NCBI RefSeq assembly: GCF_001194135.2
Contig: NC_069009.1
Location: 961,643-1,025,619, forward strand
Length of the DNA stretch: 63,977 nt
From: Octopus bimaculoides
Lineage: Eukaryota
Direction: 5' to 3'
Shown here: positions 5,312 to 63,190 of the stretch, piece by piece
Layout: every line of letters starts with the position of its first letter
How positions within the stretch are numbered: the stretch's first letter is position 1
Program-made: the position numbers and the translations under genes
Notes under the pieces: generated by a model
Database searches by the model: none
What the model saw: only the letters and a program-made list of their open reading frames with translations
Told to the model about the DNA's origin: nothing

Positions 5312-6691
5312 CTAATGAATGAGTCTGTGAGTAGTCAAGTGATCTATTTCAAAGAATGATTCACCACAGACATCACAACGATGTGATTTCACTCCTGAAT
5401 GAACACATTTGTGTCTACTTAAATGTCCCTTTTGAGTGAATGATTTACTGCAGATATCACAGTGATATGGCTTCTCACCTGTATGGATAAGCTTGTGTTT
5501 AGTTAAGCTAACTTTTATAGAGAATGATTTACCACAGATATCACAGTGATATGGTTTCTCTCCTGTATGAGTACGTTTATGTACAGTTACATTACTTTTT
5601 TGAGCGAATGATTTACTACAGATATCACATTGATATGGCTTCTCTCCTGTATGAGTAAGTTTGTGTGTAGCTAACTTATCTCTCACAGAGAATAATTTAC
5701 CACAGATATCACACTGAAAAGGTCTCTCGCCTGTATGAATAAGTTGGTGAGTAGTTAAGTCACTGTTTCGAGAGAATGATTTACTACAGATATTGCAATG
5801 ATATGGTTTCTCTCCTGTATGAATACGTTTATGTACAGTTACAGCACTTCTGTGAACGAATGATTTACCACATATATCACAATCATATGGCTTCTCTCCT
5901 GTATGAGTAAGTTTGTGTGCAGCTAAGTTAACTCTCACAGAAAATGATTTACCACAGATGTCACAGTCATATGGTTTCTCTCCTGTATGAATACGTTTAT
6001 GTACAGTTACAGCACTGCTTTGAGTGAATGATTTACCACAAATATCACAATGATATGGCTTCTCTCCTGTATGAGTAAGTATGTGTGTAGTTAAAGTTGC
6101 TTTTAGGGAGAATGCTTTCCCACAAGTATCACAGCAATATGGCTTCTCTCCTGTATGAATACGTATGTGTTTAGCTAAGTTAACTTTCACAGAGAATGAT
6201 TTATCACATATATCACAATGATATGGCTTCTCTCCTGTATGAGTAAGTTTGTGTGTCGATAAATGCTGCTTTTGGGAGAATGATTTTCCACAAATATCAC
6301 AGTGATGCAGCTTCTCTTCTGTATGAATACGTTTGTGAAGAGTAACTTTACTACTTTTAGAGAATGGTTTACCACAGCTATCATAATGATACAGGTTCAC
6401 TCCTGAATGAACATGTTTGTGTACAGTTAGGCTGCTTTTGTGAGTAAATGATTTACCACAGACATCACAGCGATATGGTGGCTCTCCAATATGAATGAGT
6501 TTATGAATATCCAATGCATTATTTGTAGAGAATGATTTACCACAGATATCACAATGATATAGTTTTTGTCCCATGTGAATATTTCTGTGAATAGTTAGGT
6601 TACCTTTTTTAGAGAATGATTTTTCACAGATATCACAGTGGTATACAGATTTTCCTCTTTCTTTGGGCATCTCTGCAGGTAAAACTAACAA
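5312..6691 (-). CDS. C2H2 zinc-finger protein ZF2 (16 fingers, one degenerate); start uncertain
   Basis: 459-aa ORF of C2H2 repeats ending [12 protein letters not shown]. The ORF start is a non-ATG codon; an in-frame ATG (MPKERGKS) lies just inside. Confidence 0.92.
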
Positions 6692-11669: not shown

Positions 11670-12827
11670 TCACTGGTATTGTTTCTTTCTCATATGACTG
11701 CGCTTGTGAGTACTAAAGCTGCTTCTATGAGCAAATGATTTACCGCAGATATCACAATGATATGGCTTCTCACCTGTGTGAGTACGCGTGTGAGTACCAA
11801 AGCTGCTTCTATGAGCAAATGATTTACCGCAGATATCACAATGATATGGCTTCTCACCTGTGTGAGTACGCTTGTGATCAATCAAAGTACCATATCCAGA
11901 GAATGATTTACCACAGGTATCACAGCAATATGGCTTCTCTCCTGTATGAACACGTTTGTGAATAGTTACGTGACTAGATGAAGAGAATGATTTCCCACAG
12001 ATTTCACACTGATATGGGTCCTCGCCTGAATGAATGCCTTTATGAACAGTTAAGGCACGTCCATAATAGAATGATTTACCACAGATATCGCAATTATATG
12101 GTTTCTCTCCTGTATGAATGTATTTGTGTCTATTTAGGTAACTATTTTCATAGAATGATTTACCACAGATATCACAGCGATATGGCTTTTCTCCTGTATG
12201 AATGCGTTCGTGAGTAGTCAAATGATAAATATCATGAAATGATTTACCACAGAGGTCACAGTGTAGATATTTTCCTCTTATGTGAAGCTGTTTGTGTGTC
12301 GTTAAATTAGAAGCTTGCGAGAATGACTTACCACAGATATCACAGAAATAGGGCGTCTCACCTGTATGAATACGTCGGTGAGTAGTCAAGTTACCTCTCC
12401 GAGTGAACGACTTACCACAGATATCACAGTTATGTGGTTTTTCACCTGTATGAATACGTTGGTGACGGACTAAGTCATTTTTTCCATTGAATAATTTACC
12501 ACAGCTATCACAATGATATGGCTTCTCTCCCGTATGAATACGTCGGTGAGTGCCTAAGCTACCTTTCTGAGTTAATATTTTACCACAGATATCACATTCA
12601 AATGTTGTTTTGCCCTTTTCATTCTTTACATCATTAGAAAAATCAATTTTTTCAGCTTGTTTTTTACATTCATCTTCACACCTATATAATTCATTTTCCA
12701 TAATCTTCCTTTCTCTTGTCACAGTACACAAATATTTTCCTTCCTTTTGTATATTGCTCTTAACAAATATTTCTACTGATATATCTCCGTCATTAATAAT
12801 CTTCGTTAATATCTGAAGATGCTGCAA
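11670..12827 (-). CDS. C2H2 zinc-finger protein ZF3 (11 fingers); likely start MENELY at 12701
   Basis: 385-aa ORF. The acidic/basic leader [27 protein letters not shown] is shared with ZF4 and ZF5. Confidence 0.92.
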
Positions 12828-16450: not shown

Positions 16451-17681
<1,231 letters not shown>

Positions 17682-20006: not shown

Positions 20007-20426
<420 letters not shown>

Positions 20427-20596: not shown

Positions 20597-21040
<444 letters not shown>

Positions 21041-26294: not shown

Positions 26295-27192
26295 ATGATG
26301 GCCGTTTGGTACCTGCTCTGCTCTTTGTCTGCAATATTTTGTAAGTTTTATTTTTTTTTTATTCTATTTTTTTCCATAACTTATTTTTGTTAAGGCAAAC
26401 CTACTCAGGTGCACAGAGGTCTGGAATGGGTCACTCACATAAGTTGGATTTTCTTTGTTTTGACAAGGATTTTTCCAATTTTGTTTTCACCACAGCTTTA
26501 GAAATGATGCATTTTATTGGAAGAAATTTTTGGAAAATTTATGATTTTCCACCACAATCCAACTTATAAACTATCTACCTCATTAACAACTTATATACAG
26601 AACCTCAGGTCCCAAAACATTCCCTAGTTGATTAACAGTGAGCCATCACACCCACCCCATACAACACTAATCTTGGCATTGTTTATAAGAATCACCCACT
26701 ATCTTTCAAAACCACAACCCCTCATTATTTAATAAATTCTCAGATGCAATCCTCTCATGTAAACACAGATCCTATTCATTGTTTGCTGATTATGTTAAAT
26801 CTATGTAATTCCTTGATTACGATTAACCTTAAGTTACAACTTAGTTGCACTAGTGACATATCACTTCCACTAATACCACCTCCCCCATTCTAAATATTTC
26901 CTTAAGATTACCTTTACACATTCCTGCTACCCAGCACATACCCCTTTACAAAGGACCCCGTCCTCATACTTTGAATTCTTACCTGATCATCTTAGTACTT
27001 CCTACTCCTACTTTTACTACCAACTCCCTCTATTTACTCATACATGTCTACATACCTCAGTACTTTCATGTGCCACCGACCCATCTTCCTTTTTCAGATT
27101 TCCCCTTTGCTACACTACTAGCATCTGTAAACTTTTGTTTTCATCTTTTACAGGTTTGACAAGTGCAAACACTTATAAAATCACCCAAAGTG
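26295..27192 (+). CDS. Ig-family gene C, partial: signal-peptide exons 26295-26340 and 27154-27192
   Basis: Spliced MMAVWYLLCSLSAIF-C-LTSA-NTYKITQS-G. Both donors are GTAAGT, phase 1, and the exons are homologous to exons 1-2 of genes A and B. No adjacent Ig exon is visible; it may lie in the 28823-29777 gap. Confidence 0.75.
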
Positions 27193-29930: not shown

Positions 29931-32456
29931 ATGGAAATTCTAAAGTTCTTCTGTTTGTCTGCAATATTTTGTAAGTCTTTGTCGTTCTTTTTCTTTATAA
30001 TTCACTCTTATTTCTTTATTGCCCACAAGGGGCTAAACATAGAGGGGACAAACAAGGACAGACAAAGGGATTAAGTTGATTAAATCGACCCCGGTGCGTA
30101 ACTGGTACTTATTTAATCGACCCCCGAAAGGATGAAAGGCAAAGTCGACCTTGGCAGAATTTGAACTCAGCCAATGAAATAGTCATGTAGTAACGCCTTA
30201 CAGTCATTTTCCTGAAAGTCACGAGGAAACAAATCCAACTCTTGTGAATTTTCCAAAACTATTCCTCACCCTCAGAATGAATTTTTCCTCTAAAAATTGA
30301 GATGTAATCAATCTGTACCATCTAGGGCATATTTGTAGAAAATTTCTTTAAGAAAATATCCATTTTTCAGGCACTTGTGAGTAAGCAAAATCAAGTAGGG
30401 CACACTTGTGTAGGTATGCCACTTCACTTAGAAACAAGGAATGTATAGTGACAGGAAGGGTTTCTGGCTGTAGAAGAGAAAAGACAGTCTTTGTGACATG
30501 CAAGATGAAATGGTAAATGTTAAAACAATGGCAGACATCAGCATTGTGATACAATCGCCATTCTATTGTGATCATAACCGTATTGACTCGTAGCATAGTC
30601 TTGTCAGTTTATATATATTTTTTATTGTTAATACAAAAGATGTTCATGAAATACAAGATTCAATCTTCTTGTGTATTACAGGTGTAGAACATCTTCATCA
30701 GAAATTCAATATTTAGGCTTATGTTTCACATCAATGCAGATTCATGTTGCTGTGTTTCATTCTTCATCCATCTCACCAGGTGTGAGAGGGTGGATGTGGC
30801 CAGTTTGAACATAAAACAATAATATTTGGGCCACATATGGCTTGGTTAACCCTTTGGCAATAAAATTACTGTCTAATGTACTGTTCATTTATTCACATTG
30901 TTTTGAATTCTATCATCTGAAAATCAAAAACTTTGTTTTCATCTTTTACAGGTTTGACAAGTGCAAAAGTTTATATCACCAAAAGTGGTAAATAGATTCA
31001 CAAACCATTTTTTCTCCTTTTAAACTAGACACTATCTTTTCAGTTCTGTCTTCTAATTCTTTCTCTTAACTCAGCTTTTTTAGTCACTGTTTTACTTTTT
31101 GGTTTCTTAAAATGTTTTTATTTTGACCATTGAGAAAGGCTAAAGAGCCAGAAATACACATTGGGGAAGCACTAGAGCAGGGGGTTTCAACCGGGGTCAT
31201 ACACCCATGTCTGATAAAATCATGTCCCAGTAAACATAAATCTCATTAAATTAAAACTTGTTAGGCTAAATGTAATAAGATGTTTAACTTATTTTGATAA
31301 TCTATTTTGCACATTTTACCTCTTAATTTCCATGACAAAAATATTAACCCTTTAGCATTCAAATTACTCAGTCAAATGTAATGCTTATTTATTCACAATG
31401 TTTTGAATGAATCACACATTATCTCAGCTTTGAGATTTCAATGATGTGATGCTTTATTTCCAGAATGACATTGTAGGTTAGATGGGAGAGGTCAGATATG
31501 GCTAGTTTGAACATCAGACAAGTAGAGTATTTGGGTCTGATATCGTTAGTTTAAATGCTAAAGGGTTACATTTGGATGTGAGATGAAGGCATGGCTGTGA
31601 TTAGGAACTTTTATTTCCAAGCGTATAATTTAAGGTCCAGTCCCCCTGTATGGCACCTTGTTTAAGTGTCCTCCACTATAGCCCCAGGCCAACAAAAGCC
31701 TTGTGAGTGGATTAGGTAGATAGGAGCTAAAAGGAGCCCATTGTGTGATGTGTGTATATATGGGATATTATAGCCTTGTTTGGAAACAGATGGAGGTTAG
31801 TGACAGGAAGAGTATCCTACTGTTGAGAATGAAAACTCTTATCCACGAAACATGGAACAGTGGGCATCATAATGATGCTGATTTTCTGTCTTGATGAATT
31901 TTTAGTTGAATGAATTGACCCCAGTACTTATTCTACTGGTCTCTTTTGCTGAACCACTAAGTTACTGGGACATAGACACACCAACACTAGTTGGCAAGTG
32001 GTGGCGGAGAACAAACACACATATAAATAAACAACAGGCTTCTTTCAGTTTCCATCAACCAAATCCACACACAAGGTTTTGGCTCATCTGAGGCTGTAGT
32101 AGAAGACACTTTCCCAAGGTACTGTGTAGTGGGACTGAACCCAGAACCATGTGATTGGGAAGCAAATTTCTTATCTGATTTCTTTATTTCAGGAAATGTT
32201 GTGCTCAATGGAAATGTCACTCTTATGATAACAATACCAAATATGAGACGACCAGTGGTTTGGAGGTGTCACAATTATAAATATGAATGTGACAGGACGT
32301 GTGCTAACGGCACTAACTATAAAGTTACGCAGAGTGGAAATCATTCCACTCTGTGGATTCGAAATGTGACAAAGGAATGTTTGACTTGGAGATTCGACGA
32401 TGACAACCTTCAAGGTGGAACAATTCATTTGAAGATAAACAGTAAGGAAATGATTC

Positions 32457-32488
<32 letters not shown>

Positions 32489-33776
32489 TCCTTTATTGGC
32501 CATTGAGGGTTGAGACAGTGGAAAATATTTAGGATGGTACAGTGTAGGTTTTAGCATGTAAAAAGTCATAAAATAAATGAAAGGAAGTCAAAAAAAGTAA
32601 ATTCCCCAATAGAGGTGTGTACCTCTCCAATTTACAGGTACACACTGAGAGAAGGCCCATTCACTCAAGCAATGCTCACCTATCAACAAACTGCTTGGAA
32701 GGCGGCACTTCCCTCTCCACCCATACCTATAATGGTGATACTTAAAAAAGTTAAATTAAATTTTTTTAAGAATTGAACATACAAATTTCCCAATAAGTAA
32801 GTGGTCATATTATTTATATCCTACATCAAACTACAGTACCTTTGATTTGGCTGCCATCATTGAAAGATTGAAAATACTTCTCAAATTTTATGCACTATCT
32901 TCTATAAGTATTTAATTTTGTTCACATTCTTTTTCATGATGCGTTTGGTGTAGACACCGATCAAGTCTACAGTCAAACACTTACAAAGCTCAATTCAGTT
33001 CAATTTAAAAGCATAGATAAGCTATGCATTGTAAGCCACACCATGATTTGCAAAATAATTTATCTTACGTTATGCTTCACCCCTGATATGCCTTTTTCTT
33101 TTACTCATATTAAAATTGCTGCCTCTAGGGCAGCGGACTTGCGGTCATAGGATCGCGGTTTCGATTCTTCTGAAGAGGAACATATAATCTTTTAGATATA
33201 GTAATCTAGGATACTGATGTGTGTTGACCCTTTTGTTATTAGATTTTTGTTGAAATACACTGCCTTTGTTTCAATTAATCTTTAAATAAAGAATTTAGTA
33301 AAATAACTTCATCACTTCTAAGTTGCTGTTTGGAACATAAATTACTATGAAATTTTGATGGAAGCTTTAAATTTAGATCATTTTAAACCTATTGTTACTT
33401 TATTTCTGTGGAAATACACTGGCTTTGTTTCAATTAATTTTGAAAATATAAAATAATTTAGTAAAATAATTTTGTCATCATTAAACTGGTTTTTCGAACA
33501 TAAATTAACAGGAAATTTTGATGGAAGGTTTCAATTTGGATCATTTAAAAAAAAAAGAGGGCTTTGCACCATCGAAACAAGGGCAGTCTTGAGCAAGTTG
33601 GAATGCAAAGGGTATATAAATGATATGTTTTATTGTTGATCTTTGTATGTGATACAACACCAATATCTGTGGCATATGATGATATCACACTGAAATCTTT
33701 TGCAGATGGTGGAACCAGCAGCCTCAGAACCAGCTTCATCTTTGTCATTGGGATTATAATTGCTGTCATCATTTAA
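29931..33776 (+). CDS. Ig-family gene A: 131-aa signal peptide + single Ig-like domain + GPI-signal-like tail
   Basis: Exons 29931-29970, 30952-30987, 32193-32441 and 33706-33776 are all GT-AG, phase 1, and sum to 396 nt. Protein: MEILKFFCLSAIFCLTSAKVYITKSGNVVLNGNVTLMITIPNMRRPVVWRCHNYKYECDRTCANGTNYKVTQSGNHSTLWIRNVTKECLTWRFDDDNLQGGTIHLKINNGGTSSLRTSFIFVIGIIIAVII. Confidence 0.85.
31348..31565. mobile_element. piggyBac-like MITE (218 bp)
   Basis: TTAA|CCCTTTAGCATT...AATGCTAAAGGG|TTA. Partial copies at about 2080-2290, 12855-13150, 28035 and 30780-30910. Confidence 0.75.
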
Positions 33777-35933: not shown

Positions 35934-37124
35934 TTACAGTGATATGACTTCTGTATGAAATTGTTTGTGCCTAGTCAACAGATTATTTTGAGAAAATGAT
36001 TTACCACAGATATCACAATGATATGGCTCCTCACCTGTATGTGTACGTTTGTGAACATTTAAGTTACCAACTCCAGAGAAGGATTTACCACAGATATCAC
36101 AGTGATATGGCTTCTCTCCTGTATGAATACGCTTGTGAGTAGTTACGTTACTAGTTTCAGAGAAGGATTTACCACAGATATCACAATGATATGGCTTCTC
36201 TCCTGTATGAATGCGTTTGTGACGAATCAAGGTATTATTTTGAGAAAACGATTTACTACAGATATCACATTGATATGGCTTTTCTCCGGTATGACTGCGT
36301 TTGTGAATAGTTACGTGACCATTTTCAGAGAATGATTTACCACAGATATCACAGTGATATGGCTTCTCTACTGTATGAACACGCTTGTGAGTAGTCACGG
36401 TACTAGCTTCAGAGAAGGATTTACCACAGATATCACAATGATACAGCTTCTCTTTGGTATGAACATACTTGTACTTAGTTAAGTTACCAGTTTCAGGGAA
36501 GGATTTACCACAGAAAACACACTGATATGGCTTCTCTCCTGTATGAACACGCTTGTGCTTAGTTAAGTTACCAGTTTCAGAGAAAGATTTACCACAGATA
36601 TTACAGTAATATGGCTTCTCTCCTGTATGAACACGCTTGTGCTTAGTTAAATTACCAGTTTCAGAGAAGGATTTACCACAGATATCACAATGATATGGAT
36701 TCTCTCCTGTATGAATACGTTTGTGACTAGTTAAGATACTATGTCTAGAGAATGATTTACCACAGATATCACAATGATATGGCTTCTCTCCTGTGTGGAT
36801 GCGTTTGTGATCAGTCAAGTGATAATTTCGAGAGAAGGATTTACCACAGATATCACAGTGATATGGCTTCACGCCTGAATGAATGTATTTGTGAACAGTT
36901 AAGTTGTGTCCATAAGAGAACGACTTACCACAGATATCACAATGATATGGCTTCTCTCCTGTGTGAACACGTTGGTGAATGACTAAGTCAGCTTTCCGAG
37001 AGAATAATTTACCACAGGTATCACAATCATATGATATTTTGCCCTTTTCATTCTTTTCCTCATCAGGAAAATCCATTTCTTCAGACTCTTTTTTTATATT
37101 CATCTTCACTCCAATATAATTCAT
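35934..37124 (-). CDS. C2H2 zinc-finger protein ZF5 (13 fingers, one degenerate); leader frameshifted relative to ZF3/ZF4
   Basis: 396-aa ORF. The ancestral ATG at 37131 is out of frame because of a T7 run at 37089-37095. Ends HTEVISL*. Confidence 0.88.
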
Positions 37125-40100
37125 TTTCCATATTGTTCCTTTCTCTCGTCACAGTACACAAATGTTTTCCTTCCTTTTGTATATTGCTCTTAACAAATAT
37201 TTCTACTGATCTATACGTGTTATGTATAACATCTTTGCTCAGTCTTTAAGATGTTCAATACTAATGATGTAGTTTATATAAAAATTCTGTGATGCAGATA
37301 TCATCTGACAATCTGAAACAAAAGAGAAACAACAGTGTCAAACGTACGAGATAATTACAAATTAGAGAGGTTAAAACCAAGGAAGTTTTACAACATTTTC
37401 ATATAGACATGACCATAAAGGTGCAGGCACGGTTGTGTGGTAAGAATTTTGCTTACCAACCACATGGTTCTGGGTTCAGTCCCAGAGTGGCCAATCAAAG
37501 CCTTGGGTGGAGGATTTGTTAGGTGGAAACTGAAAGAAGCCTGACATATACCAAATACCAAAATGTATTCTAGTCAAAATAAGCAAAACAGAAATTAAAA
37601 TATGAGGTACCTTTCATTAAATCCAAATTCAATCGTTTAAACAGGAGTGCTCTCCCTTTGTTTACTTTCAATTTACAAAGAAGGCGCGTCATAAAAAGGC
37701 TTTTTTTCTAATTCCTTTTCTTCTAACAGTTTCTTTGAGGAGAAGAAAGACAAATATTGAATTTCTCAAACTAATTATTCAAACTACCCTAGAAAGAATT
37801 TAGGTAAATGACTTAAGGTCATGATGAGGAATAACAGAAAATACCGTATCTATTTCATGAGCGTGACAATAATCCAACTCTACAAGACATGCAGAATTGT
37901 CAGTGCCAAAGCCTCCTGCAGCAGCTAAAAGGTTACTGAAAAATATCAGAAATCCTAGGGGTTTTATAAGCCACTTTAGATATTTCTAGAAGCGTCCAGA
38001 AATTAAATTTCAGAACAATTTTGATGGAAAACTTGGATGGCTTCGGCTAATAACTTATTAAGGTTAACAATTATTAAACCAATGAAAAGAAACTTTTCGA
38101 ATTGTCTTCGTCTAAATTTGTATTTTAGCACCAAAAGAAAATTTTCACAGAACAACTCCAGTTGATTTGAAAACATATCTGCTACAAAACTATTGTAGTA
38201 CAAAATCTTGAATATCCTAAGATTTCTGATTATAAAAGGTTTGTACAAAGAGAAAACGAACTTCAAAAGAAGAATAAGCTGGAATTATTACTTTACTCAC
38301 AATTTAATCTCAATCGTTATCTTCGAAAGAGTCCTTTACCCTACAGTTTTGATTCAAAAGTAGAGATTCATCAAGGAAGTCTGCTAATTGCTGACAAGAA
38401 ATGAAAGAACATCTGACATCAGAAATAACAGTGATCCTATGGTAATGGAGAATTTATAAAACATGCATTGGTTTGCTTTTCAAATACCGAAACGAAATTA
38501 TAGTATTGTCCCAAAATTAATGGCAATTATATATTTATTTAAAGCAAAAATGAATTTCATTTCCATAATTAGTATATAAACTTATCTCAATCCGCTAAAT
38601 TTGAAATCGATAGTGTAGCGACGCAAGTCATAAATAAACTTTATTGGCAGCAAACATGACCATTACATCATAGAGTACTAAGAACCGTATTTCGTGAAAA
38701 ATTTCTCTTTGAAGAAAGTTTAGAATTCTAATATGGGCAGAAATTTTAACCGACGGGGGAAAGACTTCCGCTCCCACCTTCTCTCCCAAATTTATTTATT
38801 TTGTAATTTTTTTTGACAAAAATCCCCGTTTTCGGATACGGAGATTCCGGAAAATTGCCAAAACTGGGCATTTGTGAAATTTCCCCCTAATTTCTTCAAT
38901 TTTGACTTTTTTCCCCAACACGAAGCCTAACCTTGAAACCGTAACCATAAGTATAGAAATGTTTTGAAATTTTTGTCCGAATCATGGTGTCCATATTTTT
39001 CCGCATATTTAGANNNNNNNNNNNNNNNNNNNNNNNNNNNNNNNNNNNNNNNNNNNNNNNNNNNNNNNNNNNNNNNNNNNNNNNNNNNNNNNNNNNNNTT
39101 TTTTTTTTTTTTGTTTTTTTTCCAACATATTTTGTAAAGAAAAAAATTCTGAAAAAAGTTTTGTTTATGTGTAAATTCAAGAGATTTGGCTGCTATTTCT
39201 AGCATGTGTAAAGACACTGGTTAGAAATCACCTGCGCATGTGCAAATAATGATAATGTAAATAATCGTGTTAATACAATACGCGCCTTCCTTCCTCCGAA
39301 ATTTTGCAGGAGGGACCCATCCCGAAAGGATGAAAGGCAAAGTCGACCTCGGTGGAATTTGAACTCAGGACTTAACGGCAGACGAAACACCGCTAAGCAT
39401 TTCGCCCGGCGTGCTAACGATTCTACCTAAAATACTAGAGTACTTGAGCCCTCAATAATGTCGGGGTTTGTGTTGGAAAATTTGCACGATCGGAGTAATG
39501 AGGACAATTGAAAACGCGGAAGTAACAGGTAAGGAAGAAAATTACATTTATCACATTTCTAAAGAGACATCAAAAGGGGGTTATTTTGGTAATTTTTCTG
39601 ATTAACACCCGCACGATTTTCACTAGGGTGTTAGGGTTAGGTAATCGTGCAGGTGTTAATCTGAAAAATACCGTTATATAAACGAAATTTTCTAATACAG
39701 GCGCAGGGGTAGCTATGGGGTAACAACTTTATTTCTCAACCACATGGTTCCGGGTTCAGTTCCACTGCATGAAATTTTGGTAAATTTTACCGAAATTTTC
39801 TATAAATATGCTTCGGATTGTGTAGATTCCAATGATATCGGATTTTACTGTGAATTGTTTTTTTCCTGAGGGTGAAGAGAGGAGTTTCGAAAAATTCACG
39901 AGACGAATTTGTTTCCTCGTAACTTTCAGAAAAAAGGGTTATGTTTACAATATTGGCTGAGGTAACGACAATGGATCGCAACCCCCTTTGGGACATTTTT
40001 TTGGCAGATTCGGAATCTCCGCACTCGATATAGTGGGTTCTCTTTTACTCTTTTACTTGTTTCATTCATTTGACTGCGGTCATGCTGGAGCACCGCCTTT

Positions 40101-41931
40101 AGTCGAGCAAATTGACCCCAGGACTTATTCTTTGGAAGCCTAGTACTTATTCTATCGGCTCTCTTTTGCCGAACCACTAAGTTACGGGGACGTAAACACA
40201 CCACCATCGGTTGTCCAGCGATGTTGGGGTGGGGTGGGGGGAACAAACACAGACATACAAACATATACACACACATATATACAATAATAGGATAAACTCT
40301 TATATGAGAATTTATCAAGTAGTTTTCGTGAAAAAAATTCATAGGGAAGAATCTATCGTCTTTCCCTAAATTATATTTATCTATTTATATATATATATAT
40401 AAGGGCATAACTATACAAGAATGCCTCACGTTAACTACCGTAAAAATACATTTTTACCGATGTTTATACACACACACATATATATATATACGACGGGCTT
40501 CTTTCAGTTTCCGTCTACCAAATTCACTCACAAGGCTTTGATCGGCCATCTCTTTACCCCTTCATATTTTTCTTTCCCTTTCACCTTCACCTCCCCATTC
40601 CTACTATCAATTGACCTTGTCTGACCTCTAACCAGTACACTTTCCCTCTCTTCATCTTTCTATTATATCTCCCTGCTTTTCTTCCTCTCTTCGCTTTGCC
40701 CTTACAAATGCATTCCCTACCTTTAGGTCACTTAAAAAAAACCCCTCCATTTAACAACACTGTACAAACTTTATACTTGGAATGACTAATTTGAAATACT
40801 TTTGGAACTTACAAGCTATTGGAATCTTATATGGGTCCAGATGGACTATATGTAATCTGAACCTTTCCCCCCTTGTTTTATTTTTTTTTACGGAATCCCA
40901 CGTTTTAGGCTGTGGAGATTCCGATTCTGAAAAAAAATTAATAAATAAGGGGAGAAAAGGTTCAGATTACATATAGTCCATCTCTGCCCTTATATGTATA
41001 CCATTCTGCCTTAAAAAAATGGATCTACGGATGCAATATCCCCGCTTATCTCATGTCTATTTTCATTCCTCCACTTCACTCTCCATTTCTTATCTAGAAT
41101 AACTATTGCTTAACCATTTTCTCACGCCGTCTCCGATGAAAGGATATATGAAACATCCTGGAAACAGCTGTAATATATATATANNNNNNNNNNNNNNNNN
41201 NNNNNNNNNNNNNNNNNNNNNNNNNNNNNNNNNNNNNNNNNNNNNNNNNNNNNNNNNNNNNNNNNNNNNNNNNNNNNNNNNNNNNNNNNNNNNNNNNNNN
41301 NNNNNNNNNNNNNNNNNNNNNNNNNNNNNNNNNNNNNNNNNNNNNNNNNNNNNNNNNNNNNNNNNNNNNNNNNNNNNNNNNNNNNNNNNNNNNNNNNNNN
41401 NNNNNNNNNNNNNNNNNNNNNNNNNNNNNNNNNNNNNNNNNNNNNNNNNNNNNNNNNNNNNNNNNNNNNNNNNNNNNNNNNNNNNNNNNNNNNNNNNNNN
41501 NNNNNNNNNNNNNNNNNNNNNNNNNNNNNNNNNNNNNNNNNNNNNNNNNNNNNNNNNNNNNNNNNNNNNNNNNNNNNNNNNNNNNNNNNNNNNNNNNNNN
41601 NNNNNNNNNNNNNNNNNNNNNNNNNNNNNNNNNNNNNNNNNNNNNNNNNNNNNNNNNNNNNNNNNNNNNNNNNNNNNNNNNNNNNNNNNNNNNNNNNNNN
41701 NNNNNNNNNNNNNNNNNNNNNNNNNNNNNNNNNNNNNNNNNNNNNNNNNNNNNNNNNNAGTCGTAAGTTACCTCATCATTTCGCATTTGTTGATTCCCTG
41801 AAGATGAATATACGTGGAATTTCAGCAGCTCTTATTTCTTTGGAGGAGGACTCACATATATTTTGAAACATGTGTAGGAATTAAAGGAACTTTTATTTAT
41901 ATGCGTTTTGCTCCATTTATTGTTATTATTC

Positions 41932-42539: not shown

Positions 42540-43030
42540 AATCGAACTCAACGACTGGCACCCATGCCAACGTCGTCTCCTTCATTGGACACGAAACTCG
42601 GCTTGCGAAGACCTGTTGGGGCAAGCGAAATCGTGATGGCACCTGTGCATCGCCTTCCTGGCACTTGTGCCGGTGGCGCATGTAAGGACATTCGAGCGAG
42701 ACCGTTGCCAGTGCTGCTGGACTGGTTCTTGTGTGGGTGCTGCGTGAGATGCACCATTTTGAGCGTGGCCGTTGCCAGTGCCGCCTGACTGGCCTTCATT
42801 CCGGTGGCAAGTAAAAGCACCCACTACACTCTCGGAGTGGTTGGCGTTAGGAAGGGCATCCAGCTGTAGAAACTCTGCCAAATNNNNNNNNNNTCTCGGA
42901 GTGGTTGGCGTTAGGAAGGGCATCCAGCTGTAGAAACTCTGCCAAATCAGATTGGAGTCTGGTGTAGCCATCTGGTTCACCAGTCCTCAGTCAATTCGTC
43001 CAACCCATGCTAGCACGGAAAGCGGACGTT
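42540..43030 (+). mobile_element. SINE with (GAT)n tail
   Basis: Same body and tail as 38-335 and 62365-63190; local duplication across a 10-N gap. Confidence 0.8.
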
Positions 43031-43961: not shown

Positions 43962-46900
43962 TTAAATGATGACAGCATTTATAATCCCGATGACAAAGAT
44001 GAAGTGGGTTCTGAGGCCGCTGGTTCCTTGTGCACCATCTGCAAAAAAATTTCAGTGTGATATCACTATATGTCACAGATATTGGTGTCGTATCACATAT
44101 AAAGATCAACAATAAAACATATCATCTATATACCCTTTTCATTCCAACTTGCTCAAGACTGTGGCCATGCTGGAGCACCGCCTTTATAGTCTAGCAAATC
44201 GACCCCAGGACTTATTCATTGTAAGCCTAGTACTTATTCTATCGGCTCACTTTTGCCGAACCGCTAAGTTACAGGGGCGTAAACACACCAGCATCGGTTG
44301 TCAAGCAATGCTGGGGGGGGGGGCGCAAGCAGACACACAAGCACACACATACATATATATACGTATACATATACGACGGGCTTCTTCCAGTTTCCGTCTA
44401 CCAAATCCAATCACAAGGCTTTGGTCGGCCCGAGGCTATAGTAGAAGACACTTGTCCAAGGTGCCACGCAGTGGGACTGAACCCGGAACCATGTGGTTGG
44501 TAAGCAAGCTACTTACCACACAGCCACTCCTGCACCTATAAGCTACTTACCACACAGCCACCCCTGGAATTATTAATATTATAAATTATTTCCTTACTGC
44601 TTATCTTCAAATCGGTTGTTCCAAAGTTGATATTGTAGTCCGCAAACATCCAGGTCAAACAATCCTCTGTTACTTTTGTTATCGAAAGAGTAGAAGTATT
44701 CCCACTCTGCATAACTTTATAGTTAGTCCCGTTAGCACATGTCCTGTCACATTCATATTTATAATTGTTGCACCTCCAAACCACTGGTCTTCGCATATTT
44801 GGTACTGTAATATTGAGGGTGGCTTCTCCATTGAGCTTAATATTTTCTGAAATAAAGAAATCAGATAAGAAATTTGCTTCCCAAAAACATGGTTCTGGGT
44901 TCAGTCCCACTGTGCAACACCTTTGCCAAGTGTTTTCTACTACAGCCTCGACTATCATAATTGCAGCTACATGGTAATCAAATGAGTGGTGGTGCAGTAA
45001 AAAAAATGCACCCACTACACTTTGTAAAGGGGTCAGTTTTAGGAAGGTCATCAAGAAATAGGAACCTTGACAATGCATGGAATGGAGCTTGCCACAATGT
45101 TGGCTTGTTGGATCCATGGCAAGATTGAAGGTGGCCATTTTATAAGTACCCTCACACAGGCCATCTCGACCCTGGTTGAAACCCACTGCTCCAGTGCTTC
45201 CCTGGTGTGTATTTCTGGCTCTTTAACCTTTCTCAATGGTCAAGTTAAAAATTTAAAGAAACCAAAAAGCAAAATAGTGACTAAAAAAGCTATGAGTTAA
45301 GAGAAAGAAATAGAAAACAGAACTGAAAAGATAGTGTCTAGTTTAAAAAGGAGAAAAATGTTTGTGAATCTATTTACCACTTTGGATAATTTCATAAATC
45401 CCTGCACTTGCCAAACCTGTAAAAGATGAAAACATTAAGTTTTGATTTTCAGATGATATAATTCAAAACAATGTGAATAAACAAACAGTACATTAGACAG
45501 TAATTTGATTGCCAAAGGGTTAAGCCAGCCATATCTGGCCCAAATATTACATAGGCGCAGGAGTGGCTGTGTGGTAAGTAGATTGCTTACCAACCATATG
45601 GCTGCGGGTTCAGTCCCACTGCGTGGCACCTTGGGCCGACCAAAGCCTTGTGAGTGGATTTGGTAGACGGGAACTGAAAGAAGCCCGTCGTATATATTCA
45701 ATAAACTGGGATATTATGGCAGGAAGAACATCTGATTGTATATAAAGAAAACTCTGATCACAAGTATGGAAAATTAGGTGTTCAAACAATGATGATGGTG
45801 AAAAGATAACCCTGAAATCTTTCATATGACAAAACTGTCGCTAACATTGGTTTATCTGTTTATTTCAGGTCCAGTTGTGTTAAGAGGAAATGTCACTTTT
45901 CATACTGAAGAAATAGCCAATATGAAAAGGTCTATTATCTGGGAAAATGGTCGTTGCAGTCTCAGATATGCCAATACATGCTGCAACAATGGTAACTATG
46001 AAGTTAGCCACACTGGTAACATTTCTACTCTTTGGATCCAAAGTGTCTCTCAGGAAGATATGACTTGAGTTTTTCGAAGTGACAATCTCTGCTATGCGAA
46101 AATTACTGTGGTGACAAAAAGCAAGGAAATTACTTCTGCTAATAATAACAACAATAATTTCATCAATCCCCAAGAAGATGAAAGACAATACCACAGAACA
46201 ATCAATCATCTCTTGTATATGGATGATCTTAAAACTGTATGCTGCAAATGATAAACAAATGGAAACTTTATTACAGACAGTACATGGATTTACCAAAGAA
46301 ATAAATATGAAATCTAGCTTGGAAAAATGTACCAACGCAACCTTGAAAAGAGGAAAACTAGTTAAGAGTAGCAACATCACACTAGATAAAGCAAATGAAG
46401 TAAGAGAATTAGACCAAAGCCTTCCCACCAGAAATACATGAAGTTAAAAAAAAAATACAAAGCCCAGTCCTGGCTAAGAAGGAACATATTCAGAGACATG
46501 ACTGAGTTGGGACCTATATACACTGGAAGCTATGCCAACACTATGGAATAACAACAGAAAAAGATGTTATAAGCTCACCCCAGAAAAGGTCACAGAAAAT
46601 GAGAAAGTAACCATATTCTGGGATATGTCAATATGCACAGATAGAGAATTCAAGGCCAATAGACCAGATATAGTTGTCAGAGATCACCAAGATCATCAGA
46701 AATCACCATTGTAGACATATGTTGAGAGGAATTCTTCGGGGTTTGGAGAACTTACCTTTGGAAACATGGGTGTTTCATTCAACATCCTTAAACAACTCTT
46801 ATTCAGGGACCTTTTGAGCAGGATGGGCTACTCAACCTGAAGAAAATTCTAACTGGGCCCCACTTGCAAGGTCATGCACTGTTCATCTTGATATGAGATC

Positions 46901-48067
46901 ACCATGTCGTGCACATATGGTTGTGATGCAAGTGCTTGGTGTACCCTTATCAGACGGGTAGTCATGATGGGTATAATGGGCTTTGTATATTTTACCCCAG
47001 TGTCACTTTGATGGCATGCACTGCTCTCTCACTCAATAATAATAATAATAATAATGATAATCATCACTGAACAAATATTTTTATAATACTTAAGCAAAAT
47101 TAAAAATTTGTAACTTTCAGGGTTTTCTTCTGTGTTTTTTTCTTTTTTCTTTTTTTCTTTCTTTTACCTGTTTTGAATTAATAGATCTTCATAATAATCC
47201 CTGCTGAGATATATTCGTAGTTGACTGAATGGATTGGTTAGTTTCAGTCTCTAGGATCACCTGTCTATATTACAATTTATTTGTTGAACATCTGACATGT
47301 GGCGCACTTGTGCCCTTGTGCAGACAATGTTGATTTGATGGAAGGAGGGAGTTAATGTACAACTCACACATTTGATCCCTATAAGTAAATAATTTGTGCA
47401 GGGCTTCCAGTCAAAACTGCACACTGATATGTCATCTTTGACAGCAGATTCTGTTATATCTTCTACTATATAAATGCAAGTGTATGTGGTTATGTAGCTG
47501 TGTTTAGCCCCCAAAAGGCTGATTTTGGCCATTCGTTTTTGCATTACACACTCAAAAACCATAGGGGAAACCTTTTCAGTAAAAGTTTATTTATCACTTC
47601 ACGATTTGACAGAGGACACCACATAAGTTGGATTATCTCTGTTTTGATGGGTACTTTTCAACTTCAGCATTGGAGGCAGACATTAAATGATGATGATGAT
47701 GATTGTGTAGATTAGGATTATATCAGAAGTTAATATGGAAACAATTTGGTTGGCATGTACATATTAGTACTGACAAATTTCAAGTTTCATCTTGTAGATA
47801 TATGTGCTGTGTGTGAGCCTGCCATTTTTTTCCTTAAATAAATATTCAAAAACCTTTATTTCATTTTCATGTGTGTGGTGAAAAAACAATTTGAAAAATC
47901 CCTCTCAAAACAGAGAAAATCCAATTTATGTGGGTGACCAATTCCAGACTTCTGTTTACTTGTATAGTTATGCCTCAACAAGAATGAATTTTTAAGAAAA
48001 AAAAAAAAAAAAAAACAAACTTACAACATAATGCAGACAAACAACAGAAGAACTTTAGAATGTCCAT
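43962..48067 (-). CDS. Ig-family gene B: 135-aa paralog of gene A
   Basis: Exons 48067-48025, 45416-45378, 44846-44598 and 44038-43962 are GT-AG, phase 1, and sum to 408 nt. Protein: MDILKFFCCLSALCCLASAGIYEIIQSENIKLNGEATLNITVPNMRRPVVWRCNNYKYECDRTCANGTNYKVMQSGNTSTLSITKVTEDCLTWMFADYNINFGTTDLKISNGAQGTSGLRTHFIFVIGIINAVII. Confidence 0.85.
44135..44535 (-). mobile_element. Near full-length tRNA-headed SINE in intron 3 of gene B
   Basis: Head GGTGCAGGAGTGGCTGTGTGG...GGTTCAGTCCC, central TA/GT microsatellite and 3' body. The first about 25 nt of the head are tandemly duplicated. Confidence 0.88.
45869..46120 (+). pseudogene. Ig-family exon D (252 nt, phase 1-1) with in-frame TGA and GC donor
   Basis: CTAAC branch point and TTTATTTCAG acceptor. 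Reads GPVVLRGNVTFHTEEIANMKRSIIWENGRCSLRYANTCCNNGNYEVSHTGNISTLWIQSVSQEDMT*VFRSDNLCYAKITVVTK, then GCAAGGAAAT where A and B have GTAAGGAAAT. Confidence 0.78.
46160..46700 (+). mobile_element. R4/Dong-clade (RLE) non-LTR retrotransposon fragment, internally deleted
   Basis: INHLLYMDDLK/LYAAND (RT YxDD), then HIQRHD*VGTYIHWKLCQHYG and IFWDMSICTDREFKANRPDIVV (RLE PD motif). It starts right after an (AAT)n tract. Confidence 0.85.
46715..47060 (+). repeat. Interspersed repeat ending in an (AAT)n tail, possibly a Dong-related 3' end or SINE
   Basis: Ends GCATGCACTGCTCTCTCACTC-AATAATAATAAT. Confidence 0.5.
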
Positions 48068-48967: not shown

Positions 48968-49105
48968 TAACAAAAGATATTGTGTATGTTTTAATATATA
49001 TAACAATAGATATTGCGTATGTTTTAATATATATATATAACAATAGATATTGCGTATGTTTTAATATATATATATAACAATAGATATTGCGTATGTTTTA
49101 ATATA
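48968..49105. repeat. Minisatellite, about 33-37 bp x4
   Basis: AACAATAGATATTGCGTATGTTTTAATATATAT repeated. Confidence 0.9.
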
Positions 49106-49500
49106 CTCTTTTACTTGTTTCAGTCATTTGACTGTGGCCATGCTGGAGCACCACCTTTAGTCGAGAAAATCGACCCCAGGACTTACACTTTGTAAGCCTA
49201 GTACTTATTCTATCGGTCTCTTTTTGCCAAACCGCTAAGTTACGGGGACGTAAACACACCAGCATCAGTTGTCAAGCGATGGTGGGGGAGACAAACATAC
49301 AAACATATACACACACATATATATATACATATATACGACGGGTTTCTTTCAGTTTCCGTCTACCAAATCCACTCACAAGGCTTTGGTCGGCCCGAGGCTA
49401 TAGTAGAAGACACTTGCCAAAGGTGCCACGCAGTGGGACTGAACTCGGAACCATGTGGTTTGTAAGCAAGCTAATTACCACACGGCCACTCCTGCACCTA
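49105..49500 (-). mobile_element. Full-length tRNA-headed SINE
   Basis: Colinear with 44135-44535. Confidence 0.88.
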
Positions 49501-50044
49501 CATATATAACAGAAACTCCAATGATTGTTTCCTTGAAGTTAGAGGTGATGATTGATATTTCTGATATGTTTTTATTCCATCTAAAGATTACAAAAGATGA
49601 CTGAAGAAACGTTTATTTGAAATGAGGACATTTTTCTCCAATATGCTAATAACTTTCATGTGACACTTTTGAAATGCCAGCAGAATGTCAGTGCCAGTTA
49701 ATTACTAAAGGAATTTTATCACAAATTCTACAGTGGTCGCTAAAATTATGCATGGGAGTTTGAATTTCCTTGCTAATTATAGCTAATTATGTCATTCGTG
49801 ATTTCCTCTGTAATCATGTTTCACATAAATCCGAAATCCCACTTTTCGAGGATAAAACGAATTTGTACTCATATAGAGAATTACTGACATGAAAATGCTT
49901 TTGCATATTTTGTCACAAAATAATGGTAACGCGGTTACCATTATGTGAAAGGAAACCACAAATGACATAGCTAAAATTAGGAAAGAAAGTCAAACTTCTA
50001 CACATAATTTTTAGCAAAGTACAATATGTAACAGGATTCTTTAA

Positions 50045-60093: not shown

Positions 60094-62163
60094 GGTAAAT
60101 CTTTCTCTCTGTTGAATACCTTAAACGTTCATAAAAATATTCATATAGGAGAGAAACCGTACCATTGTGACATATGTGGTGAATCATTTTCTAGAAAGAA
60201 CACCTTAACTGCTCATAAACGCATTCATACAGGTGAGACACCATATCATTGTGATACCTGTGGGAAATCATTTCCTCACAGAAATACCTTAACTGAACAC
60301 AAACGTATTCATACTGGAGAGAAGCCATACCACTGTAATATCTGTGGTAAATCATTCTCTCAAAAATCTATTTTGGCTATCCACATGCATATCCATACAG
60401 GTGAGAAGCCATATCACTGTGATGTCTGTGGTAAATCTTTCTCTCAAAACCCCCATTTAAGTGCACACAAGCGCATCCATACAGGAGAGAAACCATATCA
60501 TTGTGATATCTGTGGTAAATCATTTACTCACAAAAATACCTTATCTAACCACAAACCTACTCATACAGGTGAGAGGAAATACCATTGTGATATATGTGGT
60601 AAATCATTCTCTCGTAATGATCTCTTAAGTGTACATAAACGTATTCATACAGGAGAGAGACCATATCACTGTGATATCTGTGGTAAATCATTCAGTCGTA
60701 GTCACCACTTAACTGCTCACAAACATATTCATACTGGAGAGCAGCCATATCACTGTGATATCTGTGGTAAATCATTCTCTCACAGAAGTACCATGGCTGT
60801 ACACAAACATGTTCATTCAGGATTGAAACTATATCACTGTGATATCTGTGGTAAACCATTCTCTCAAAGTAGTAAAGTTACTCTTCACAAACGCATTCAT
60901 ACAGGAGAGAAGCCATACCACTGTGATATGTGCAGTAAATCGTTTTCTTATAAAACAAATTTAACCAATCATAAACGTACTCATACAGGTGAGAAGCCCT
61001 TTCACTGTGATAATTGTGGTAAATCTTTCTCTTACAAAACTAATTTAACTATCCACAGACGCACTCATACAGGAGAGAAACTATATCACTGTGACACCTG
61101 TGGTAAATCATTCTCTCACAAAAATACTCTAACTCTGCACAAACAGACTCATACGGGAGAGAAACTATATCGCTGTGATGTCTGTGGTAAATCATTCTCC
61201 CAGAGTGGTAAAGTAACTCTTCACAAACGCATTCATACAGGAGAGAAACCATATCACTGTGATATATGTGGTAAATCATTTTCTTACAGAACTAATTTAG
61301 CTACCCATAAACGTATTCATACAGGTGAGAAACCATATCAGTGTGACAACTGTGATAAATCTTTCTCTTGCAAAAGTAATTTAACTCTTCACAAACGTAC
61401 TCATACAGGTGAGAAACCACACCACTGTGATATCTGTGGTAAATCATTTGCTCACAGAAGTTCTATAACAGTACACAAACGTACCCATACAGGAGAGAAA
61501 CCGTATCACTGTGATATCTGTAGTAAATCATTCTCTCGAAACGGTGACTTAGCTACTCACAAACTTGTTCATACAGGTGAGAAACCATATCAGTGTGACA
61601 TCTGTTATAAATCATTCTCCGTGAGAGTTAACTTAGCTAAACACAAACGTATTCATACAGGAGAGAAACCATATTGCTGTGATACTTGTGGAAAATCATT
61701 TTCCCAAAAGGAGCATTTAACTAAACACAAACTTACTCATACAGGAGAGAAGCCACATCATTGTGATATCTGTGGTAAATCATTCACTCACAGAAGTGCT
61801 GTAACTGTACATAAACGTACTCATACAGGAGAGAAACCATATCACTGTGATATCTGTAGTAAATCATTCTCTCGAAGTGGTGACTTATCCACTCACAAAT
61901 TTATCCATACAGGTGAGAAACCTCACCACTGTGATATCTGTGGTAAATCATTCTCTGTAAAAGTTAACTTAACTAAACACAAACGTATTCATACAGGTGA
62001 AAAGCCATATCACTGTGATATCTGCAATAAATCATTCACTCAAAAGGGACATTTAAGTAGACACAAATGTATTCATTCAGGAGTGAAACCACATCATTGT
62101 GACACCTGTGGTGAATCATTCTCTGAAATAGATCACTTGACTACTCACAGACTCATTCATTAG
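60094..62163 (+). CDS. C2H2 zinc-finger protein ZF6 (24 complete fingers plus one partial; 5' part in gap)
   Basis: The frame is open from the gap edge and ends [12 protein letters not shown] as in ZF2. The leader at 59340-59419 matches the ZF2 leader at 6820-6898. Confidence 0.93.
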
Positions 62164-62364
62164 GAGAGAAACCATGTCATTGGGATAAGTTGCTAATCCT
62201 ATATGTTTTTATATATACTCACCAATATCTACCATTCTGATATTTTTAATAAAATCTGTTCTTTCATGATATTCATATATATTCCATTAAAGATATTTTC
62301 TGAATGAATAAAAAAATACTATTTATGTTTGTCATTATGTGTATGATAGATGAGGAATGTATAT

Positions 62365-63190
62365 TCATGGACTGGCTCTTGTGCGGGTGACACATGAAAT
62401 GTTTCGAGCGGGATCGTTGCCAGTGCCCCTGGACTGGCTCATGTGCAGGCGACACATGAAATCTTTCGAGCGAGATTGTTGCCGGTGCCCCTGGGCTGTC
62501 TCTTGTGCGGGTGACACATGAGGTTTTTCGAGCGAGATCGTTGCCGATGCCCCCGAGCGAGATGAGCGTGGCCGTTGCCAGTACCGCCTGACTGGCCTTC
62601 GTGCGGGTGACACGTAAAAGCACCCACTACACTCTCTGAGTGGTTGGCATTAGGAAGGGCATCCAGCTGTAGAAACTCTGCCAAATCAGATTGGAGCCTG
62701 GTGTAGCCATCTGGTTTCACCAGTCCTCAGTCAAATCGTCCAACCCGTGCTAGCATGGAAAGCGGACGTNNNNNNNNNNTTGTGCGGGTGACACATGAAA
62801 TGTTTCGAGCGGGATCGTTGCCAGTGCCCCTGGACTGGCTCATGTGCAGGCGACACATGAAATCTTTCGAGCGAGATTGTTGCCGGTGCCCCTGGGCTGT
62901 CTCTTGTGCGGGTGACACATGAGGTTTTTCGAGCGAGATCGTTGCCGATGCCCCCGAGCGAGATGAGCGTGGCCGTTGCCAGTACCGCCTGACTGGCCTT
63001 CGTGCGGGTGACACGTAAAAGCACCCACTACACTCTCTGAGTGGTTGGCATTAGGAAGGGCATCCAGCTGTAGAAACTCTGCCAAATCAGATTGGAGCCT
63101 GGTGTAGCCATCTGGTTTCACCAGTCCTCAGTCAAATCGTCCAACCCGTGCTAGCATGGAAAGCGGACGTTAAACGACGACGACGACGAC
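62365..63190 (+). mobile_element. (GAC/GAT)n-tailed SINE with about 62-bp internal tandem repeats, present twice across a 10-N gap
   Basis: ACTGGCTCTTGTGCGGGTGACACATGAAATGTTTCGAGCGGGATCGTTGCCAGTGCCCCTGG x3. The two copies are essentially identical, probably an assembly duplication. Confidence 0.8.

Follow-up and report, generated by a model that had tools for sequence, protein, structure and literature searches.

Can the contrast between a nearly unchanged core and strongly different flanking parts in two neighbouring immunoglobulin (Ig)-like genes of an octopus be read as the diversification of a ligand-binding surface on a fixed scaffold? This question is raised by a stretch of 63,977 nucleotides (nt) of Octopus bimaculoides (NCBI RefSeq assembly GCF_001194135.2, contig NC_069009.1, positions 961,643 to 1,025,619 of the forward strand), here called the window, whose positions are counted from its first letter. 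The DNA belongs to chromosome record CM046629.1 of assembly GCA_001194135.2, at ~1.00-1.01 Mb. Gene B, on the minus strand at 43962-48067, is LOC106883582 and encodes 135 amino acids, and its inverted paralog, gene A, is LOC106883299. An earlier note on this DNA had proposed a V-type Ig domain whose FG loop, the equivalent of the third complementarity-determining region (CDR3) of antibodies, is diversified. Gene B is instead an ordinary lineage-specific gene of the immunoglobulin superfamily (IgSF), but a real one. We consider it likely that its product is a small, glycosylated surface protein with a glycosylphosphatidylinositol (GPI) signal and one I-set-like domain, a member of an Octopoda-restricted family of mosaic ancestry in which the part formed by the BC loop, strands C and C' and the segment leading to strand D is constrained. 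The practical yield is a corrected gene model and a fold assignment for gene B.

Gene B, its family and its conserved core

Gene B is an intact four-exon octopus gene. Its coding sequence (CDS) runs from an ATG at 48067 to a TAA ending at 43962, exactly the limits drawn in the earlier note, and the translation of the joined exons is 100% identical to the NCBI protein. The exons are as follows:

48025..48067, minus strand: exon 1 CDS, leader, 43 nt, MDILKFFCCLSALC plus 1 base, the N-terminal part of the signal peptide; donor gtaagt
45378..45416, minus strand: mini-exon, 39 nt, phase 1-1, (C)LASAGIYEIIQS(E); bounded by acag/gtaaat
44598..44846, minus strand: Ig-like domain exon, 249 nt, phase 1-1, NIKLNG...DLKIS; bounded by tttcag/gtaagg
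43962..44038, minus strand: last exon CDS including the stop codon, (N)GAQGTSGLRTHFIFVIGIINAVII and stop; GPI-signal-like

The same exon structure with the same 249-nt Ig exon had been ascribed to genes A and B, which is correct once the mini-exon, located via the NCBI protein, is added. A direct splice from the leader to the domain exon was tried and rejected; it creates a TAA in gene B and a TGA in gene A, so that the 39-nt mini-exon at 45416-45378 is required. Splice boundaries are AG/GT at all four exons of gene B, and their phases are consistent only when the mini-exon is included. The mini-exon encodes the last part of the signal peptide and, after it, strand A; the N-terminus is signal-like (MDILKFFCCLSALCCLASA, followed by G), with cleavage predicted at ASA/G, within the mini-exon product. 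The 249-nt exon, of phase 1-1 and bounded by tttcag/gtaag, has been found in 9/9 exons examined, and a domain encoded by a single exon of this phase is what is expected in the IgSF. The O. sinensis ortholog, LOC115225106 (Osi106, locus L003), is intact and lies in conserved synteny. In addition, a 1067-nt contig from an octopus RNA library encodes, without interruption, a family member in which leader, mini-exon, domain and tail follow one another as in gene B, which shows that genes of this layout are spliced and expressed.

The size of the family became apparent only by profile search: a word-indexed protein search found only 3-7 relatives, and an exhaustive HMMER profile search over 1.84 billion representatives returned 36 matches at E<=1e-3. 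The family itself comprises about 34 representatives at 50% identity. Species were looked up for 28 of the matches at E<1e-7 (P0025, P0026 and P0027 being left out), and none of the looked-up matches at this level carries a functional name. The 24 species-named matches besides the one from Haliotis (P0031) are all "uncharacterized" proteins of O. bimaculoides, O. sinensis, O. vulgaris or Argonauta hians, the other exceptions being the octopus RNA library contig (P0014), a sequencing-run contig (P0029) and an MBG/GLUG-repeat protein (P0030). Family members contain one to four tandem domains, one exon each, and end in GPI-like or transmembrane tails; many lie on the chromosome of gene B, for example LOC106867739 about 55 kb away, and many of the database models are fragments or read-throughs. 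The 249-nt exon encodes the family motif PNM(K/R)RPVVW-x(8)-EC-x3-C ... STLWI ... W-x-F-x-D, and every invariant or near-invariant column is present in gene B (W31, E39, C40, C44, V52, W73, F75, D77, L87). Judged from these sequences, the family is fast-evolving, restricted to Octopoda and chromosomally clustered. A literature search on the LOC identifiers and on octopus IgSF expansions found nothing on an octopod CxxxC Ig-like family.

The domain exons of genes A and B resemble each other far beyond chance (tblastn E=4e-39, 73% amino-acid identity), and blastn reveals colinear inverted similarity across leader, intron pieces, domain exon and tail. In the core PNMRRPVVWRC(H/N)NYKYECDRTCANGTNYKV, 6/90 nt differ; five changes are synonymous (AGA/CGA, CGA/AGA, TGT/TGC, ACG/ACA, GGC/GGG), exactly those that the earlier note had listed, and the sixth gives the H/N replacement. 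Its description of the N-terminal strands and of the segment after the F-strand Trp as strongly different was likewise accurate, with 6 residues differing over the 14 N-terminal codons and 9 over the 17 codons after the Trp (RFDDDNLQGGTIH vs MFADYNINFGTTD). The ratio of non-synonymous to synonymous rates (omega, Nei-Gojobori) between A and B is 0.30 overall, lowest in the core (0.04), intermediate in the middle (0.26) and after the Trp (0.25), and highest over the 14 N-terminal codons (0.95); in a hand calculation from site counts, the binomial probability of at most one non-synonymous change among the six in the core is ~0.001. The comparison of gene B with its ortholog gives an overall omega of 0.27, with 0.10 for the core and 2.4 for the segment after the Trp, and core values in other pairs range from 0.04 to 0.13. 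By these rates the core is clearly under purifying selection, which together with the intact exons and splice sites upholds the proposal of a real gene under constraint. The conserved core extends from the BC loop across strands C and C' and on through the segment leading to strand D (PNM+RPVVW-C-NYKYECDRTCA-G); this constrained part defines the family and is probably a functional or structural site.

It has to be asked whether this core was kept similar mainly by a recent gene-conversion tract between the two neighbours rather than by constraint. The core difference between A and B (6/90) equals that of their homogenised flanks (0.093) and is half of that between B and its ortholog (12/90) or between A and Osi458, O. 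sinensis LOC115225458 (14/90), and the grouping of the tail region is clearly not that of the domain exon. Nevertheless, five of the six core differences are synonymous, the residues concerned are kept in 36 domains from four species, a run test of A against B in the core is not significant (P=0.43), and the contrast between core and non-core differences, 6:45 for A-B vs 12:30 for B and its ortholog, is marginal (estimated P~0.06). Since synonymous core changes accompany residues conserved over 36 domains, constraint exists regardless of conversion, and conversion as the main cause of the conserved core is thus possible but rather unlikely.

Exchange between family members has probably taken place elsewhere in these genes. 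In the exon tree, gene B pairs with LOC115225106, and gene A with LOC115225458 and LOC115225109; the pairing of B is supported because a further domain exon lying antisense in its intron 1, exon C, is conserved in intron 1 of the ortholog. In the tail region, which groups differently from the domain exon, the distances are 0.077 for A-Osi458, 0.117 for A-B and 0.243 for B-Osi106, and the tail of Osi106 resembles that of its O. sinensis neighbour (0.145). A permutation run test joins gene A to a distant O. sinensis paralog over 16 concordant polymorphic sites in codons 73-82 (P=4e-4 pairwise, ~0.014 after correction for 36 pairs), and the 110 nt that precede the domain exon do not tell orthology from paralogy. 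These groupings, taken with the four-fold divergence given below, indicate that segments were exchanged, or flanks homogenised, among family members, probably by gene conversion. As segments have different histories, part of the contrast between conserved and variable regions reflects mosaic ancestry and not selection alone.

Fold of the domain and the place of its variation

A family alignment of 36 domains was built as input for AlphaFold2. The resulting model of the 90-residue domain of gene B has a predicted local distance difference test score (pLDDT) of 96.3 and a predicted template modelling score (pTM) of 0.87, and its strands 4-6, 16-21, 29-33, 36-40, 50-55, 58-63, 72-76 and 82-86 correspond to A, B, C, C', D, E, F and G. 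In a Foldseek comparison with the PDB, every listed match is an Ig domain (E down to 2.4e-4, TMq 0.62-0.69), including antibody light-chain variable (VL) domains, obscurin Ig32, titin I10, twitchin Ig26 and sDscam Ig1 (rank 34). The strand C Trp, W31, is invariant in 36/36 family domains, and hhalign places it on the invariant Trp of a canonical Ig domain and I20 on the B-strand Cys. On this model, the domain is an Ig-like beta-sandwich, its eight strands falling within the 7-9 expected for the two-sheet Greek-key fold of the superfamily.

The Ig-like part of the earlier assignment therefore stands, and the V-type part is not supported. V-set domains have extra C' and C'' strands and a length of ~105-125 residues. 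The model of gene B lacks a C'' strand, only 8 residues separating C' from D, and VL matches need ~105-110 alignment columns for the 90-residue query, whereas I-set matches align at equal length. Sequence profiles link the family weakly to titin, obscurin and CD2, and in Pfam the four-domain paralog P0004 falls just short of the I-set cutoff of 23.7 bits with a score of 23.6, and 56.8 bits are reached by the Haliotis relative. The missing C'' strand, the length of 90 residues and the sequence links to the I-set make the modelled domain look I-set-like rather than clearly V-type.

The place of the variation is also different from the one proposed, and from the framework-borne hypervariable BC, C'C'' and FG loops of V-set domains in antigen-receptor-like use. 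The least variable segments by per-column entropy are the BC loop (PNMxRP), the equivalent of CDR1, and strands C and C'; in the close subfamily, mean entropy is lowest in the BC loop (0.51 bits) and amounts to 1.30 in the FG loop. The latter is only 5 residues long (77-81), with D77, N79 and N81 (D-x-N-x-N) kept family-wide. The most variable columns (1, 15, 19, 34, 53, 55, 58, 60, 74, 76, 80, 82, 84) alternate with conserved hydrophobic ones, in one sheet along strands B, D and E and in the second along C, F and G, and the 27 residue differences between A and B show the same alternating-strand pattern. With burial deduced from strand alternation and conservation rather than from model coordinates, the variable positions appear to be outward-facing residues of strands in both sheets, with no concentration in a loop like CDR3. 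Scattered variable residues, which the earlier note itself had named as refuting its reading, are thus what the mapping on the model strands gave: instead of forming one surface on a fixed scaffold, the variation is spread over strands A, B, D, E, F and G.

A V-type receptor whose FG loop and neighbouring strands have been diversified by positive selection for ligand specificity nevertheless draws on real contrasts. Non-core positions differ between A and B at 45/156 nt vs 6/90 in the core (Fisher P=1.7e-5), non-core non-synonymous divergence is ~0.24 per site, that is 2.6 times that of the non-coding flanks (0.093; P=4e-6), and the N-glycosylation sequons shift, gene A having N15 and N65 and gene B N19. 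Omega exceeds 1 in small segments, reaching 2.4 after the Trp between gene B and its ortholog and 1.5-1.65 at the N-terminus in some pairs. The first of these values consists of 1 synonymous and 9 non-synonymous changes and is not significant, and no pairwise segment shows an omega significantly above 1, values above 1 resting on 1-4 synonymous changes. On the tree of nine exons from two species, omega is 0.90 for the N-terminal segment, 0.27 for the core, 0.44 for the middle and 0.82 after the Trp (0.49 overall), and a counting site analysis of the single-likelihood ancestor counting (SLAC) type over these 9 exons, which has low power and uses crude parsimony at saturated synonymous sites, found no codon with significant selection.

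The excess over the introns deserves a separate word. With introns as the neutral reference, non-core non-synonymous divergence of about three times the intron divergence at first looked like positive selection, and this was rejected, as four-fold sites are equally elevated: 113/1220 sites differ in the aligned non-coding flanks (0.093) and 51/249 in the domain exons, and 9/23 four-fold sites differ (0.39, four times the non-coding value; Fisher P=1.6e-4 against the non-coding sites). Because four-fold and other synonymous sites are as elevated as non-synonymous ones, which points to a different age or to sequence exchange, the excess is read as mosaic ancestry and not as selection. The most suggestive hint of adaptive change in the family comes from the recent O. 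sinensis paralogs LOC115225458 (L002) and LOC115225109 (L005), with an overall omega of 0.97, 22/82 residues but only 1/22 four-fold sites differing, and 8 non-synonymous against 0 synonymous changes in the middle segment; it is not significant.

Considering the kept D77, N79 and N81, the least variable BC loop next to them, the alternation of variable positions along strands of both sheets and a 90-residue domain that lacks C'' and is not clearly V-set, we judge a positively selected V-type receptor to be quite unlikely. The non-core part evolves close to the neutral rate, positive selection not being demonstrated, and the antibody-like reading of "CDR3 diversification" is unsupported by the available data.

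Cysteines, glycosylation sequons and the predicted membrane anchor

The canonical disulfide between strands B and F is absent from gene B, in which I20 stands at the place of the B-strand Cys and F75 at that of the F-strand Cys (motif E-D-C-L-T-W-M-F). This disulfide is common but not obligatory in the IgSF, CD2 domain 1 being an example. The domain exon encodes four Cys, at domain positions 33, 40, 44 and 70. C40 is invariant and C44, which completes a CxxxC pair, occurs in 94% of the family domains; C33 and C70 co-vary, both being present in 17 domains and absent in 15, with a single one in 4, and another subfamily has C76/C81 in their place. The domain is therefore probably stapled by the disulfides C40-C44 and C33-C70, the latter linking strand C to the E-F turn. 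Three sequons are found in gene B (N19, N46, N57) and four in gene A (N15, N46, N57, N65).

At the C-terminus of gene B, NGA is followed by a 9-residue polar spacer (QGTSGLRTH) and a 13-residue hydrophobic run (FIFVIGIINAVII) that ends at the stop codon, with no cytoplasmic residues beyond it. A GPI signal consists of small residues at omega, omega+1 and omega+2, then 5-10 polar residues as a spacer and, at the very end of the protein, a hydrophobic run of 10-20 residues. The small residues, the spacer, the hydrophobic end and the missing cytoplasmic tail fit such a signal, and the product of gene B would thus be GPI-anchored. A true transmembrane anchor of a type I protein might be suspected, since the multi-domain paralogs P0004, P0005 and P0007 have clear transmembrane segments followed by basic cytoplasmic tails. 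To this reading we give little credence for gene B, whose run is short, ends at the stop without any cytoplasmic residue and follows N-G-A and spacer in the classical layout of an omega site.

If the GPI-linked reading holds, a cleavable signal peptide would direct the product into the secretory pathway, and a mature protein of ~92 residues, made of one 90-residue Ig-like domain with three potential N-glycans, would be held on the outer leaflet of the cell membrane by GPI, in an architecture like that of Thy-1 or CD48. As we read the evidence, the family grows by duplication of genes and exons, its members swap segments, and exposed residues on the non-core strands drift near the neutral rate. 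By analogy, a role in cell-surface recognition or adhesion seems most likely.

Several points weigh against this overall picture. A Pfam scan of the gene B domain alone gives nothing at threshold, gene A reaching I-set only at E=0.13, and hhalign assigns the match of B to a canonical Ig domain a probability of only 18%. The disulfide pairs follow from the co-occurrence of Cys and not from model coordinates, the GPI assignment is a rule-of-thumb reading of the tail, and the proposed role in recognition or adhesion is drawn from architecture and analogy. Finally, the expression support for gene B itself amounts to the NCBI model and the transcript of a relative.

Surroundings of the gene and comparison with known systems

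Three copies of the domain exon were detected in the window by tblastn: A at 32192-32449 (+), B at 44847-44590 (-) and C at 45868-46128 (+). A zinc-finger open reading frame (ORF) lies in the ~10 kb that separate the convergent genes A (+) and B (-). Gene A has two tandem modules of leader and mini-exon as alternative 5' ends (isoforms X1/X2 vs X3), separated by an assembly gap (a run of N at ~28.8-29.8 kb); further assembly gaps occur in the window. The features of gene A and exon C are these:

26295..26340, plus strand: gene A alternative leader exon 1a, MMAVWYLLCSLSAIF; partner of the mini-exon 27154-27192
27154..27192, plus strand: gene A alternative mini-exon 1a, (C)LTSANTYKITQS(G)
29931..29970, plus strand: gene A leader exon 1b, MEILKFFCLSAIF; partner of the mini-exon 30952-30987
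30952..30987, plus strand: gene A mini-exon 1b, (C)LTSAKVYITKS(G)
32193..32441, plus strand: gene A Ig-like domain exon, the same exon as that of B; comparison paralog
33706..33776, plus strand: gene A last exon CDS, (N)GGTSSLRTSFIFVIGIIIAVII and stop
45868..46116, plus strand: exon C, third family domain exon, antisense, inside intron 1 of gene B

Exon C has an in-frame TGA (46066-46068) where the family has its near-invariant F-strand Trp. In O. sinensis the same antisense exon lies in intron 1 of the ortholog (L003 19081-19368 (-), annotated LOC118768153), but there the damage is of another kind, 27 nt having been deleted and with them the Cys region. Exon C is probably a relic pseudo-exon, conserved in position and older than the split of O. 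bimaculoides and O. sinensis. That gene B itself should be a functionless, decaying duplicate or an annotation artefact, as relics of this kind, with the stop of exon C at a conserved Trp, the many fragmentary or read-through models and the non-core omega near 1 might suggest, is very improbable given its ORF intact over four exons with canonical splice sites, its core omega of 0.04-0.10, the presence of all family-invariant residues (W31, C40, C44, W73, F75, D77, L87) and an intact ortholog in conserved synteny.

Just downstream of exon C, at ~46180-46700 (+), lies a reverse-transcriptase-like fragment with a YMDDL motif and in-frame stops, which appears to be a decayed retroelement insertion in the intron of gene B. 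Repeats resembling tRNA-derived short interspersed nuclear elements (SINEs) are very abundant (44157-44541, 45545-45700, 49104-49508, 40040-40550, and 44874-44950 beside the Ig exon); in A, B and three O. sinensis paralogs, one such fragment lies directly against the polypyrimidine tract and acceptor of the domain exon, and being common to these genes it predates the duplications. An (AAT)n microsatellite directly follows the domain-exon donor in A (32470-32500) and C (46140-46160), and several database models of the family (P0010, P0022, P0032) run through (AAT)n and end in "...NNNNNNSF", which are probably annotation artefacts. In P0027, another of these models, a family domain is joined to zinc fingers, probably by a chimeric prediction. 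The Ig-like genes are surrounded and separated by six long ORFs for C2H2 zinc fingers:

347-1723, minus strand: C2H2 zinc-finger ORF
5312-6691, minus strand: C2H2 zinc-finger ORF
11670-12827, minus strand: C2H2 zinc-finger ORF
16539-17681, minus strand: C2H2 zinc-finger ORF
35934-37124, minus strand: C2H2 zinc-finger ORF
60112-62163, plus strand: C2H2 zinc-finger ORF

The window also contains a divergent pair of histone H3 and histone H4 genes at 20007-20417 (-) and ~20726-21040 (+), and a repeated, partly tandem ORF-like element (MKPDGYTRLQSDLA.FLQLDALPNAN.SESVVGAFTCH...) at 106-369, 42582-42980 and 62273-63121, probably a satellite or transposon family.

The family is notable for its unusual disulfide pattern, its fast-evolving exposed residues and its mosaic exon evolution, and as an octopod-only cluster of small Ig-like genes it is a reasonable candidate for cell recognition or host-microbe interaction. 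We know of no adaptive immunity in cephalopods, whose large nervous systems presumably depend on expanded families of surface-recognition proteins, the protocadherins among them. A more far-reaching idea, to which we attach only a slim chance, is that the family forms a lineage-specific recognition repertoire, immune or neuronal in the sense of cell identity, in which leaders, tails and introns would be homogenised but domain exons kept distinct. Shuffling of exon patches between the dozens of members in the clusters would then create new specificities, and the members would signal or dimerise through their common, invariant BC-C-C' face. The chelicerate sDscam, vertebrate KIR/LILR and MHC-type families are similar to that of gene B in being clustered Ig surface genes with domain exons diverging more than introns and with mosaic exchange; the likeness is one of evolutionary pattern only, and alternative-exon arrays, homophilic binding and balancing selection were not seen here.

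Among single domains, the I-set domains of titin, obscurin and twitchin (PF07679) share with gene B a length of ~90 residues and a C' but no C'' strand (obscurin Ig32, TM-score 0.67/0.67). They are among the best sequence matches and stand, beside antibody V domains, at the head of the fold ranking, but their Cys pattern is different, and the titin-type domains belong to intracellular muscle proteins, whereas that of gene B is predicted to be extracellular and glycosylated. CD2, CD48 and CD58 are, like gene B, IgSF surface proteins encoded by clustered, fast-evolving genes, with CD48 linked by GPI and an N-terminal domain devoid of the canonical disulfide. Unlike gene B they have two domains (V plus C2), and the profile matches are weak (E 0.1-0.2, not significant), fall on CD2 domain 2 and do not establish homology.

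The nearest relative outside the octopods is an uncharacterised Ig-repeat protein of Haliotis rufescens, LOC124119024 (profile E=7e-9; hhalign 79%, E=1.6e-5). It differs from gene B by five tandem repeats, additional cysteines and a transmembrane tail, and has in common with the family the CxxxC after strand C', the "STLxI" E strand, a Trp ("GTW") for the usual F-strand Tyr and no F-strand Cys. In architecture, a close parallel is provided by Thy-1 (CD90). Williams, Tse and Gagnon reportedly described a squid brain glycoprotein as Thy-1-like (1988, Immunogenetics 27:265). Thy-1 has no detectable sequence similarity to gene B and keeps the B-F disulfide, in place of which gene B has I20/F75, CxxxC and C33/C70; like gene B, however, it combines a single small Ig-like domain of ~90-110 mature residues with several N-glycans and a GPI-type signal, and has no cytoplasmic part.

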